From: Octopus bimaculoides
Taxonomy: Eukaryota
Length of the DNA: 64,000 nucleotides
Assembly: GCF_001194135.2 (NCBI RefSeq)
Contig: NC_068990.1
Span: 88,216,086 to 88,280,085 of the forward strand
Direction: 5' to 3'
Below the pieces are notes generated by a model. The model ran no database searches, had not been told where the DNA came from, and worked only from the letters and a program-made list of their open reading frames with translations. How positions within the stretch are numbered: the stretch's first letter is position 1; each line of letters begins with the position of its first letter. Positions 2,372 through 59,300 of this stretch are shown piece by piece. A program made the position numbers and the translations under genes.

Positions 2372-5300
2372 GTAATTACTTTTTGTATTTCATTATTAGA
2401 TTCCCTTCTTCTCTTTTTCTGAAACTTGTGATTTCACCTGTACTGGGAGAAGTTGGGTTGATGAGAACCTGGTATGTTCTTGTAGACATTTAGAATGTCA
2501 TGGTTCATGTTAACATCTGAAATCTTAAATGTTTGTAGCAGTTGGTGAAATCCAGTCAGCAATTAGCACTATAGTTTCCATATTCCCTTGCGTATCGGTT
2601 AACTCTGATGAGCGTAAAGTTATATAATCGGATTGTTACCTAACACTCCATTGTATTCTTTATGTGAAACCATTTGGTAAGATCAGCCATGATGGATATT
2701 TGATACTATACATTTTGGATAAAATATATATCGTTGCTATTATACAAAAGTGTCGTAAGTCCAAAATGTTGCCTTCTCAGAAAACGAAAAACTAGTTTCA
2801 CCATTCTTTTCTCTTTACATTAGCAACAGTTTCAGCTTAACAATAATACTTTGTTGAATGCATAAAATTGTAACTCCATGCATGTATGATATTTTCAGTC
2901 AGAAATATTTTTGCAAAACTGTTGTATGTGCGACTTACTACACTTTTGAAAATGCTAAACTGTTGTACTACACTTTGATAATTTTCATATCTTGGCATCT
3001 GAAACAGCTGGAGATAGGATAGTTCGACCAAAGAACTGGCTATTGCAGGCAAAATTAAGGTATTGAAAAAAACATTTGACCAGAGTTGGACATACAACAG
3101 CTTAACATAACTATGATTATATATATATATATATATATATATATATATATATAATGTAACTTAGATTCAGTAGAGTTAGGTACACTTTGATGGATTCCCA
3201 GGTATTGGTAGTGTGAGGGTCAAATCTGAGGGACACTGGTATGATAGGATTTACCTCCTCTCAAGGATTAAAAATTTCACTTCTACTATTCAGGTAGATG
3301 GGATAAAATGATAGCGACTTCTTTCATGAACCTTACAATACAATGTGTTTTATATCCATTAAATACTAAACAAAAACTCTCAGAACCTACATTCAAATTT
3401 ATGTAAGATGGAGAGTGCCATGTATGTTAATGAACATTATCAAAATAATAACAATATCACCAATCAAGTGTCAAGAATGAAGGAAGAGTCAGTGTATCCT
3501 AGTTGAGATGACATATGAAATAGTTATTTAAAAACTTTACTTCGTTATTCTTCACTACTCTGTGAAATGATGGGGGTTATTTCATGAGCCTCTCAGAGTA
3601 TATATTAAAATGCATGTAAGCTGCCAACTTCCATGTATGTTAAACAGTGAAATAAGAACAACACAATACCACAAATTGCTTGTCAAGAAATTGAAATTTT
3701 GAATAAAATATAAAACAATATAGTACATTGTTTACTAAATTAACAGTAAATTATAAAAACACAATCTATCAACAGATCTATTTTTCAGCATACAAAGGGT
3801 TAATGTGAATTCTTGTATATCATGATATACACACAACAGCTTGCCTGAATGTTTCAGTTGTAGATAATCCATTTGTACATCATTCTTCTGATGCTGTGTA
3901 TTTGTTTAAGATTGAATGGCCTTAACAAAATTTGACCTCTTTAAGGTAGTATTAGTCTTGCAAAAGCACATCATTAGAGAAGAGATGTACAAATGAATTG
4001 TTTGCAACCTAATTATTGCAATAAAGTCTCAAATAAATCTGAAGATGTACTACAATTCACATGAACTCTGATTAGAGTGTCATTTTGGGAATCAATATTA
4101 TCTTTATTATAAATTATCCATTTACAAAATTATGCACACTTACACACGCACACACACACACACACACACACACACACACACACACACACACACACACACA
4201 CACACACATAAACATATGAATGTAATATATGTGTTTGGATGGGAGGATGAGTAAGAAATGTATTTCTTGTTTTCTTTTTCTTTTTCCAGCTAATAAGCCT
4301 TTGAAGATTAAAAACATGAACATACCTCAGAAGGATATTTTGTTTCAGCTTAAGGGTAAAACTTTAAAGCAGTGCACTGAAGCTTGTTATAAGTATGATG
4401 GATGTAGTTCTTATGAGTACAGTAACAAAGTTAAGATATGTGAATTTAGTAATGTGACTCAGTTGACTGATGACCTTAAACCCAACAGTGGAAGTTGGGA
4501 TACATACATAATTAAGCCAGGTCAGTAGAGTGTTTTCATCTTATTTATTGTGTGCATGTTTTTTGTGTATTTACAAGATCAAGGAAGAGATCGAAGAGCT
4601 TCCTGGTGGGGACTCACTGAGGAACAAATGTGCCAGATTCTGGAGCCATCTTGAGGCTGTGGTAGAAGCTGAGGGTAGCTACTTTGAGCAAACTGTTATC
4701 TCCCAACCATTATTTAGTTGATATATTTTGATTTTTTAAAAATACTACTATTTTGAGATGTGATATTTTATGTTTTCTTTTCCTGCAAACTCAAATTTAG
4801 CACAAACATCCTGTATATATGTGTGTGTATATTTATATATTAAAGATATTCTCTTACCTATAGTAAATGTTAAGGATTTTTTAATTGAGGGTGGGTGATT
4901 GCTTTTAGCATGAATGTATTTAATATTTTCATTAATCTTATGGTAAGGTTGGGTATTACCAGTAGATAAATTAAAATTAGCATCTAAATAATTAATGTTA
5001 TAATACTCATTATAAATAGTAATCTTTAAACCATTTCTTTAAAAAAAACTATATATTCTCTTCTTATATAATTCTAGTTGTCTTGATTTTAATCGATTTA
5101 AATTTCCTTTCTATTTGAAAATTAGTTATGAAACACGTGTAATCTTTTTATTATATTTATCTTATGATATTTACTTTACTTTATATTATACTCATTTATT
5201 GTGCTTTTAATTATTAATTTTTCTATATGTAATAGTGGATTTTCATCNNNNNNNNNNNNNNNNNNNNNNNNNNNNNNNNNNNNNNNNNNNNNNNNNNNNN

Positions 5301-56300: not shown

Positions 56301-59300
56301 CATAGTTTGTTACATCCTTTTACATTCTGAATTCAAGTTCCACCTGGTTGTACTTCACCTCTCATACTTCCAAGATTGATAAAACTAGCACTATTCAAGT
56401 AATGTTGGATTTATTTTCATGTGCACTCACTGCAGAATGTGTGACCTTGTATTTATCATAGAAATCATTATCATAAATATGGTTACCGTCAACAATAATT
56501 TAATGATTATTCTCATTAAGGGTGCTATATTGACAATCATTTGAGCATCAGACAAAATGTGGTGTGGCATTTTTTGGCTATGTAACTTCTGAGTTCAAAT
56601 CTTGGTCATGTTAACTTTGCCCTTCTTTGACCAATAAATTATGATAGCAGCCAAATGTAGAGGCCAAATTAATTGATTAATTCCTACTTCAAAGTTTTGA
56701 TCTAGTTTCTATGTTGGGAACTAATTGTATTGTCATTATTTTTCATTGACTTAAATTTTACTTTAACTTTAGATACTCAGATCCATTTTATGAAAGTAAA
56801 AGATGCAGCTTTGGATGTATCCGGGAAAACATTATGGAATAAGAAACCTGTAACAGCAGATGCCTGTGCAGGAAAATGTTTATCTGACAAAGATTGTTTA
56901 TCATTTGAACTAAATAGAAAAAGTGGAGAATGTTACTTATCAAAGCAAACTGCAGCTTTCTCCAAGAAAATAAAATCAGACAAAAGCAGAGATTACTACC
57001 AACGAATAAAACGTAATTATTCTTTGTATTTTATTATTGAAATTCTCTTTTCCTGAAATTTGTAATCAACAGGTATACCTGTAATAATAGACATGTAATA
57101 ATAGTATTAAGAACCTGAAATACTTTGAATGTATTCTTATACAGCATTTCTTTAACTTGAATATTTTTATGCATGCTTTCACTTGTTTTCTTTTTATATA
57201 AGAAAAGAAGGCCTTGTTACTTTTACAAAACTTGAATAGTTGTAGTAACAGCAGCAGTAGTTATGACTGCTTTCACTTCATTTATTTATGTTTTGCATGC
57301 CTTAAATGGTGTGTTATGGCACAGATTGTCACCACTGGTTACTGTCCTTCATGATCTGATATACCAAATAATACAAAATGTAATGTCAATCTACATAATT
57401 GTAATTTCCTATATTTTGGTATGGTTATTATGGCAGGAGGCCCTTTATATCACCAATCATTACATGACATGAAGAAAGCACATTTTCCCATGCTACTAGA
57501 ATAAGAGAAGTTATCTACTGAGGCTAAAGAATCCTCTCTACTTAAAATAAGTTTCTATTCAGAGGAGTTTCATGGAGTTACAAGCAAAACAACCACAAAC
57601 TTTACTCTGATTTCAAAGATTTTGTCCTTTCCTGCTGAAGTTCTTCCTTCTTGAAACCCCGGCAGCAAATTCTGGCTGTCAAGGTGTTCATAAATGCTTT
57701 CTGAAAGCATTCCTGTTAACAACTTCCATACTAATGGTATGCAAGTGATTGGTCTATAATAGCAAACTATATTACCCTTGCTTTTGTCTTTCATAAGGAG
57801 TACTGTTCTCCTTCTAGTTATCCCATCTAGTATTATTCCTCCTTAAGACAATGCTGAAGTTGCTCCCTTAGCCTCCCATGTAAATAACTAAATTTCTTTA
57901 ACTAATACCCTTGAACTGAATCTGGTCCTGGGCCCCTCTAATTTAGCACTTTACTCATTAATGTACTAGTCATTCTTAGTGTTGACTGATTCTCACTGAC
58001 TATTTCTTCCCTTACTCACTTTAACCATACTGCATCTCCATTATGATTGACTGGCTTATCCCAAATATTACTCTAGAATTTTCTATCTTCTACATTAGGT
58101 TTCTCATCTTCAACACTCCTCCACTATTTATTTGGTTATAAAATCTTCTCTGATCTGTCTCAAATAATCTATCCTGTTGATACTGATCTACTCTTTTCTG
58201 ATATCTGGAAAGCTTAGCTGCCGTTAATAATTATTATTATTATTATTATTATTATTATTATTATTATTATTATTATTATTATTATTATTATTATTATTAT
58301 TATTATTATTTATTATTATTATTATTTTATGTTTGACTTTTGTTTTGCATTTGTACAAGTTGGATCCAAGTCTCACCCAGAGACCTCAAGAGACAACAAG
58401 TTAGAAGTTCATGTAGGTGTTATGCCTAGGGTACCATATATTATTATTATTATTATTATTATTATTATTATTATTATTATTATTATTATTATTATTATTA
58501 TTATTATTATTATTAAGGCGGCGAGCTGGCAGAATCATTAGCATACCGGGTGAAATGCTCGGTGGTATTTCATCTGCTGCTATATTCTGAGTTCAAATTC
58601 CATCAAGGTCAACTTTGCCATTCATCCTTTCGGGGTCGATAAATTAAGTACCTGTTGAGTACTGGGGTTGATGTAATCAACTTACTCCTCCCCCAAATTT
58701 CAGGCTTCGTGCCTATAGTAGAAAGGATAATAATAATAATAATAATAATAATAATAATAATAATAATAAAGGAAGCAAGCTGCCAGAACTGTTAGCATGC
58801 CAAGCAAATATGCTTTGCAGCATTTCATCTGTTTTTGTGCTCTGAGTTCAGATTCTACCAAGGTTGGAATTCTCCTATATCATGAAACATACATGAAAGC
58901 TCACCTGAATGTTTTAGTTGTAGATAATCCATTTGTACATCCTGCTTCTGATGATGCACTTTTGTTTAAGACTGAATGGCCAGAACAACACTTGATGCTT
59001 TGGTTGACCAACTGTTTTAAGTAATATCAACTTTACTAAAGCACATCATTAGAGAACTGTAGAAATGTAAAGTTGAGACAAGGTTTCAAATAAGTCTGAA
59101 GACGTTCTACAATTCATATGTATTCTGATTAGGGTATCATATTGTGGAACAATTATTTGCTTATAATAAATTGTCAATTTACAAAATTATACATCAGATG
59201 CTTAACAACATCTAATATATGCTAGAAAATATGTGTGTGATGTGTTTGTATGTCTGTGTGCGTGTATGCACATGTGTATGAATATGTGTGTGTACATGTG

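Follow-up and report, generated by a model that had tools for sequence, protein, structure and literature searches.

A probably inert fold-back relic copied with a tandem PAN-PAN-Sushi exon triplet in octopus

In a repetitive, octopus-type gene of Octopus bimaculoides, the intron upstream of most B exons holds an old inverted repeat, which is probably an ancestral fold-back sequence that was copied with its exon triplet and is decaying neutrally as a passenger. Since the two arms have diverged independently at the neutral rate, the repeat is likely an inert relic and not a working RNA structure. The window (the whole 64,000-nt stretch of DNA that was analysed) contains 34 exons, all phase 1-1, that join into a single 2394-aa reading frame, and its repeat unit is an A-B-C exon triplet, PAN-PAN-Sushi. 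Five runs of N are all intronic and none lies in any exon or inverted-repeat copy; the run closest to the copies (47542-47551) is 530 nt upstream of the point at which the B8 copy is truncated (48081), and the regular exon order holds across every assembly gap.

Inverted repeats upstream of the B exons

A first-pass annotation had proposed a ~340-bp fold-back palindrome upstream of the B exons. The palindrome is real, with minus-strand self-matches and a specific pairing register, but it is longer than proposed (430-480 bp): the core alignment gives ~430 nt, and in the consensus the pairing extends to ~480 nt. In compact copies, the distance from its outer right end to the B acceptor is ~50-70 nt, as estimated by eye from the alignments. 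The ends described for the B4 copy, ATCCACAAAA (22615-22624) and TTTTGTGGAT (22945-22954), were found at those positions. Likewise, the inner arms of the B1 copy (3848-3904 and 3961-4017) are 72% complementary and 56 nt apart, in agreement with the proposed loop of ~55 nt. Using the B4 copy as a BLAST query, we recovered on the plus strand the same set as first annotated, i.e. six full copies (B1, B2, B4, B5, B7 and B9) and truncated copies before B8 and B10. The repeat had been called absent before B3 and B6, and a full copy is indeed missing there, but right-end remnants are kept (14633-14724 and from 35675), which indicates that all ten units formerly carried the inverted repeat. Thus, at least the right end is retained in 10/10 units, its position unchanged. 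The copies are as follows.

3729..4132, + strand: full copy before B1 (exon 4290-4520); arm complementarity 0.60; fold -98 kcal/mol, z = -5.1
9122..9525, + strand: full copy before B2 (exon 9609-9842); arm complementarity 0.59; z = -2.8
14633..14724, + strand: right-end remnant before B3 (exon 14872-15105); 73/96 identity to consensus positions 400-495; rest lost
22576..23322, + strand: copy before B4 (exon 23417-23650), in two parts, 22576-22972 and 23299-23322
28071..28496, + strand: full copy before B5 (exon 28574-28807); arm complementarity 0.59; z = -3.7
35675..35708, + strand: right-end remnant before B6 (exon 35828-36061)
41516..41915, + strand: full copy before B7 (exon 42054-42287); arm complementarity 0.53; z = -0.6
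48081..48310, + strand: truncated copy before B8 (exon 48421-48651); right arm and part of the loop only
53386..53794, + strand: full copy before B9 (exon 53878-54111); best-preserved inner helix
58867..59187, + strand: copy before B10 (exon 59362-59595); ~110 nt of the left arm missing

A 326-nt SINE-like insert (22973-23298) splits the B4 copy within its right end, where an RTE tail with an offset of ~460 nt had first been suggested; with the insert removed, the arm complementarity of the copy is 0.61 (z = -4.2). The A6-B6 intron is just 267 nt long, which indicates a deletion. At B8, the break in the copy adjoins a TE-like open frame (47810-48088) that has no match in Pfam. The inner helix of the B9 copy pairs 53535-53557 with 53626-53648 (23 bp, including four G-U pairs).

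At the two ends of the consensus, AAATGGACAATTTATTATAAA and TTTATAATAAATTGTCCATTT are complementary and thus form terminal inverted repeats. The repeat is ~69% A+T and has no coding potential (8-13 stops in each frame of the consensus), and a scan of the window against Rfam gave no match at the gathering score. The left margin of the palindrome fades into AT-rich flank and the right margin into a GT microsatellite; in these flanks neither a consistent direct repeat, a target-site duplication nor an exact terminus was definable. Searched against itself, the B4 copy gave minus-strand matches of 59-65% identity (BLAST; E 1e-7 to 1e-12). When the conserved blocks of the unit were compared, the pre-B block was the only one with minus-strand self-similarity; the remaining minus-strand matches in the unit are repeat copies, judged to be transposons by position and not by classification.

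Divergence and folding of the arms

Copy-to-copy identity of the inverted repeat is 0.705, compared with 0.81, 0.72 and 0.79 at fourfold-degenerate sites of the A, B and C exons, respectively, so that among these paralogous copies, on which the assessment of constraint is based, the repeat evolves no slower than fourfold-degenerate sites of the adjacent exons. In agreement, the identity profile is flat from the inverted repeat through the exon. Similarly sized blocks survive downstream of C exons and upstream of A exons, and retention of the repeat is therefore not exceptional. Homology 3′ of the B exons is gone within ~50 nt, whereas the pre-B block is kept in 8/10 units and in paralogous arrays; this could be a hint of selection against its deletion. 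From these rates we infer neutrality and, therefore, lack of function.

Compensatory evolution of the arms is absent. In the decisive comparison, complementarity between the two arms of one copy was 0.567, compared with 0.575 between arms of different copies (12 copies; permutation P = 0.91), and for the window copies alone it was 0.614 within and 0.625 between copies; permutation by stem (outer, middle and inner) gave P values of 0.42-0.95. A naive expectation of 0.53 under independent decay was tried as the control and rejected. It lies slightly under the observed 0.567, but the between-copy value of 0.575 is likewise above it, and the between-copy control is thus the valid one. The pair-count tool found 76.3% of cells paired (shuffles, 76.7%), and covariation scored no higher than in shuffles (0.126 versus 0.134; 449 of 500 shuffles reached at least the observed score). 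On the sequence side, neutral-rate decay of arm identity with no covariation is what the first-pass annotation had expected of an inert passenger.

The ancestral and present sequences differ in predicted folding. The consensus arms are 78-81% complementary (79%, 158/199; 78% of 202) and the consensus folds at -167 kcal/mol (z = -16.8), compared with 52-62% complementarity and -71 to -115 kcal/mol (z -0.1 to -5.5) for single copies. Pairing is specific to its register: sliding the partner column by 1-3 columns lowers the share of paired cells from 76% to 36-44%. Within single copies, 24-125 arm-to-arm pairs are predicted and the longest uninterrupted helix is 8-15 bp, with the 23-bp helix of B9 as the exception. 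The surviving full copies are therefore predicted to be able to form weak, heavily interrupted hairpins in pre-mRNA. Several of them fold significantly better than shuffles (z -3 to -5.5), which counts against an inert reading.

These folds bear on whether the repeat works as an RNA hairpin, i.e. as dsRNA that recruits ADAR, as a source of small RNAs, or by cross-unit pairing that leads to exon skipping or back-splicing. Its retention in most units at a constant distance from the B acceptor, the copies that beat shuffles and the helix kept in B9 are consistent with such a function. In addition, cross-unit complementarity equals within-unit complementarity, so pairing in trans is physically possible, and the in-frame joining of any A exon to any B exon noted in the first-pass annotation follows trivially from the 1-1 phase of every exon. 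Nevertheless, we think this function unlikely: own-arm pairing is not in excess, covariation is absent and the substitution rate is neutral. An arm is wholly or partly gone in four of the ten units (B3, B6, B8 and B10), yet the exons are undamaged and all 34 lie in one open frame. Zhang et al. (2014, Cell) also reportedly found that local pairing and linear splicing are favoured by self-complementarity within a single intron. An excess of A>G changes (the ratio of A>G over T>C) was considered as an editing footprint and rejected as non-specific, because the 1.30-1.44 seen in the element falls inside the 1.05-1.61 range of non-palindromic intron blocks. Selection at the RNA level was also tested by strand, with 151 G·T and 122 A·C mismatches (P = 0.09). 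This slight excess of the kind that is G-U-compatible on the plus strand counts against an inert reading but is not significant.

A maintained RNA structure, as put forward in the first-pass annotation, is thus not supported, given the lack of a within-copy pairing excess, the absent covariation, the fourfold-like rate, the lost arms and the weak hairpins of present copies, and the ADAR, Dscam-like and circRNA roles suggested with it appear unsupported. As far as the sequence can indicate, there is no sign of selection for pairing, past or present. It also seems quite unlikely that the hairpin was functional when the units were amplified and that the better-preserved copies (B1, B4, B5 and B9) still act through ADAR editing, small RNAs or inclusion of the B exon, which would let a giant, fast-evolving secreted PAN-PAN-Sushi protein vary its repeat number in a structure-dependent manner.

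Paralogous loci and origin of the repeat

The inverted repeat is also present outside this gene. Three paralogous Octopus loci (L001-L003), which share at most 84% nucleotide identity with the window and show no collinearity with it, contain 11 further copies, all directly upstream of B-type exons. Together with the right end in 10/10 units, these pre-B copies support the presence of the repeat in the ancestral A-B-C unit. Across the ~230 kb of the window and these three loci, 19/19 detectable copies are at the pre-B position and none is elsewhere. Protein searches with the window exons identified as relatives O. bimaculoides LOC128248838, O. sinensis LOC118764741 and an SVEP1-like protein (P0004), and Abdopus GON-Abd-1. 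All were at most 60% identical, and no true orthologous locus was found among them. In a cuttlefish GON-type gene (L004), the sequence before the B exon had no significant match to the repeat and the homologous A-B intron contained no inverted repeat of at least 25 nt; P0004, which is transcript-derived, has a plain B-C-A-B order. Both relatives count against a functional hairpin. Our literature search on cephalopod MITEs and on GON-domain proteins found nothing useful.

The small, AT-rich, non-coding architecture, palindromic from end to end, would also fit a mobile MITE family with a target-site preference, whose members came to lie before each B exon by separate insertions and not by inheritance with the unit. 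However, collinearity of the copies continues into their flanks (spacer and acceptor region included), they are as divergent as the exons (62-78% identity), the B2/B5/B9 grouping is common to element and exon, and no copy occurs beyond the pre-B position in the ~230 kb; independent insertion is therefore very unlikely. That AT-rich, low-complexity sequence produced the palindrome by chance, as the ~69% A+T and the merely ~60% complementarity of single copies might suggest, has next to no probability given minus-strand BLAST matches with E down to 1e-34 and self-similarity in no other conserved unit block, and was already refuted by the register (76% versus 36-44%) and consensus (z = -16.8) tests.

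We therefore return to a neutrally decaying passenger as the best explanation. The repeat would have arisen in a single ancient event, either an inverted duplication or the insertion of a fold-back sequence, of ~430-480 bp, with arms of ~200 nt around a poorly paired centre of ~50 nt, in the A-to-B intron of the ancestral PAN-PAN-Sushi exon triplet. As this triplet was duplicated in tandem, every unit would have received a copy, both here and in the paralogous Octopus arrays. Afterwards, both arms of each copy would have gathered substitutions independently at an approximately neutral rate, and deletions and transposon insertions would have truncated some copies. Of the earlier proposal that a MITE-like insertion was amplified with the ancestral unit, amplification with the unit is upheld and the MITE identity is not established; the source is undecided between a MITE or fold-back transposon and a local inverted duplication, which would have the same appearance. 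Whichever the source, the element most likely has no role of its own and is a passenger.

Comparison with known systems and implications

The repeat resembles intronic MITE or fold-back (FB-type) relics in being 430-480 bp long, AT-rich, non-coding, self-complementary almost end to end and decaying. Unlike these, it has no dispersed copies in ~230 kb and no definable target-site duplication or terminal motif of a known superfamily, and it owes its copy number to tandem duplication of the exon triplet that hosts it, not to transposition. Inverted Alu pairs and other intronic inverted repeats can be ADAR substrates or promote circRNAs. As with these pairs, sense and antisense of one sequence are present in one pre-mRNA and several introns are mutually complementary. 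In contrast, both arms here are within one intron and 50 nt apart, and the predicted duplexes are short and interrupted (helices of 8-23 bp; 52-62% complementary).

Dscam-type competing structures have one docking site, many selectors, mutually exclusive exons and phylogenetic conservation with covariation. The octopus gene likewise has a repeated intronic sequence before every exon of a tandem series, but every copy holds both arms, covariation is absent and the exons, which join into one ORF, are constitutive-type repeats of PAN/Sushi domains. The ancestral stem (~200 bp, predicted -167 kcal/mol) resembles those of hpRNA precursors of endo-siRNAs, whereas most of the stem has been lost in extant copies.

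Should the element prove functional, intronic dsRNA would become connected with repeat-number variation in a secreted-protein family that evolves fast. The main value of our result is negative: a striking intronic palindrome in a cephalopod, which invites explanations based on editing, Dscam-like splicing or circRNAs, behaves as a neutral relic. Comparing each arm with its own partner and with the arms of other copies can serve as a simple test for other tandemly amplified hairpins as well.

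Host gene and exon array

The window (66% A+T) contains a tandem array of A-B-C exon triplets, built from three exon types:

A exons: about 240 nt, matching PAN_1
B exons: about 234 nt, matching PAN_2/PAN_4
C exons: about 171 nt, with a marginal Sushi match

Between 2135 and 62637, the host gene forms a very large array of 11 A, 10 B and 13 C exons, every one in phase 1-1, and the 34 delimited exons join into a single stop-free frame of 2394 amino acids. The nearest proteins in the collection are uncharacterised products from Octopus bimaculoides and O. sinensis (52-60% identity); none was more than 60% identical to the host-gene product, and the host gene itself is absent from the collection. 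Relatives also include squid and cuttlefish GON proteins and GON-Abd-1, an Abdopus transcript product consisting of a single unit with the layout signal peptide-A-B-C-GON (signal peptide-PAN-PAN-Sushi-GON). These matches place the window in an octopod-type genome. The A-B-C period is not strict, because a second C (Sushi) exon is present in three units:

18630-18800: C3'
32262-32432: C5'
45605-45775: C7'

A double C exon also lies ahead of an A exon in L001, a paralogous O. bimaculoides locus. Amino-acid identity between units is 0.49-0.64 for the A, B and C exons, and the host protein, judged from these comparisons, is changing quickly from unit to unit. In the A exons, third codon positions are at least as conserved as first positions (0.81 versus 0.76 identical), a pattern suggesting that selection on the PAN domains is relaxed or diversifying.

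A fold-back element upstream of B exons

The A-to-B intron contains an imperfect inverted repeat of ~430-480 bp (the element) upstream of B exons, and re-reading of the sequence confirmed the coordinates and end motifs reported in the first-pass annotation. When the B4 copy was used as a BLAST query, the reported copies before B1, B2, B4, B5, B7, B8, B9 and B10 were recovered as plus-strand matches, together with matches on the minus strand that were 300-370 nt long and 59-65% identical. The element had been described as absent before B3 and B6, but its right end remains in both. Therefore, 10/10 units keep at least part of the element and all derive from an element-bearing unit, in agreement with the proposal that it was amplified with the ancestral unit. 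The A6-B6 intron (35561-35827) is only 267 nt long, compared with 1.1-2.3 kb in other units; a deletion there brought the element's right end directly against the post-A flank.

Several copies are damaged. The B8 copy has lost its left arm and lies beside a TE-like open frame, about 110 nt of the left arm is missing from the B10 copy, and the B4 copy has a 326-nt SINE-like insertion (22973-23298) within its right end. This SINE-like repeat ends in (GAT)n and has further copies at 5878-6178 and 12537-12709. The open frame adjoining the truncated B8 copy (47810-48088, 92 aa) had no Pfam match and, by eye, looks like a transposase N-terminal fragment. Elsewhere, segment 38241-38539 has up to 12 minus-strand matches in the window and is probably a high-copy transposon in both orientations. 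Five runs of N, all intronic, interrupt the assembly:

5248-5354
18380-18389
32616-32625
36435-36506
47542-47551

Exons and element copies are all free of gaps, and 530 nt separate the nearest gap from the B8 truncation point downstream of it. An exact 238-nt duplicate (family D9; region 32378-32863), in which a C-exon 3' end is repeated, borders the 10-N gap at 32616-32625, and the C5 and C5' blocks (30443-30803 and 32111-32471) are 96-97% identical, much closer than any other unit pair. Together, these features point to a recent duplication, or to an assembly or haplotype artefact.

Eleven further element copies were found in L001 and in the paralogous O. sinensis loci L002 and L003, each located ahead of a B-type exon at a distance of about 80-500 nt. 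No copy away from the pre-B position was detected in about 230 kb (the window and these three loci), and the A-B intron of a cuttlefish GON-type homologue has neither element sequence nor any inverted repeat of 25 nt or more. The element has no Rfam family match and no coding potential.

Arm pairing, folding and rate of evolution

The element consensus is complementary at 158/199 positions in a 429-nt core, with complementarity reaching over about 480 nt, and is a far better palindrome than any individual copy. Arm complementarity was scored on column pairs set by this consensus. For the window copies, left arms matched their own right arms at 0.614 and those of other copies at 0.625. With six full copies added from the three paralogous loci (12 copies), the values were 0.567 within and 0.575 between copies, i.e. 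no within-copy excess (permutation P = 0.91 overall), nor was there any when the outer, middle and inner stem parts were tested apart (P 0.42-0.95, with or without G-U pairs). The pairing register is specific, since sliding the partner column left only 36-44% pairing. A pair-count check for covariation, which the first-pass annotation had called for, gave nothing beyond chance, with 449/500 shuffles equalling or exceeding the observed score.

Pairing and covariation in the element arms
Cells forming a standard pair: observed 76.3%, shuffled 76.7%
Covariation score: observed 0.126, shuffled 0.134
Pairs changed on both sides: observed 26, shuffled 26.1

In-register pairing with neither within-copy excess nor covariation indicates that the palindrome is inherited, and that pairing between the arms is, on these alignments, not maintained.

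The element consensus folds at -167 kcal/mol (z = -16.8), while actual copies reach -71 to -115 kcal/mol, with z scores between -0.1 and -5.5 (z = -2.9 for the B4 copy folded separately by the tool itself). Their longest unbroken helices are 8-15 bp, except in B9 (23 bp including four G-U pairs), so the "long dsRNA" envisaged earlier overstates the surviving structure. Plus-strand mismatches showed only a slight excess of G·T over A·C (151 vs 122; P = 0.09). An A>G excess was considered as a dsRNA-specific footprint and rejected, because A>G over T>C ratios of non-palindromic intron blocks span 1.05-1.61 and the element value (1.30-1.44) falls inside that span. Counted per site on the coding strand, A>G tends to outnumber T>C in post-C, pre-C, pre-A and post-A blocks as well as in the element, which may be a transcription-associated mutational asymmetry.

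Mean identity among element copies is 0.705, and identity at fourfold-degenerate sites is 0.81, 0.72 and 0.79 in A, B and C exons, respectively; by this neutral yardstick the element is no slower-evolving. The identity profile stays level across the element and the B exon and peaks only at splice sites. Retention of the element is also unexceptional, since conserved intron flanks of comparable length occur after C exons and before A exons. Copies differ from each other by 23-41% and no pair is near-identical, so the array is old.

Origin and fate of the element

The proposals that the element serves as an ADAR substrate, in Dscam-like competing structures or in circRNA formation receive no support from the sequence evidence, and the lack of covariation is one of the results that the first-pass annotation had set against them. 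Some residual RNA function of the element appears improbable. A MITE identity is one candidate: the terminal inverted repeats, size and non-coding nature fit, but dispersed copies are absent from the ~230 kb of sequence examined. No target-site duplication could be defined around the element, and a MITE, a fold-back transposon and a local inverted duplication are all candidate origins. In conclusion, the block goes back to a single ancestral fold-back sequence, which was amplified together with the exon triplet and has since decayed; it is probably an inert relic.
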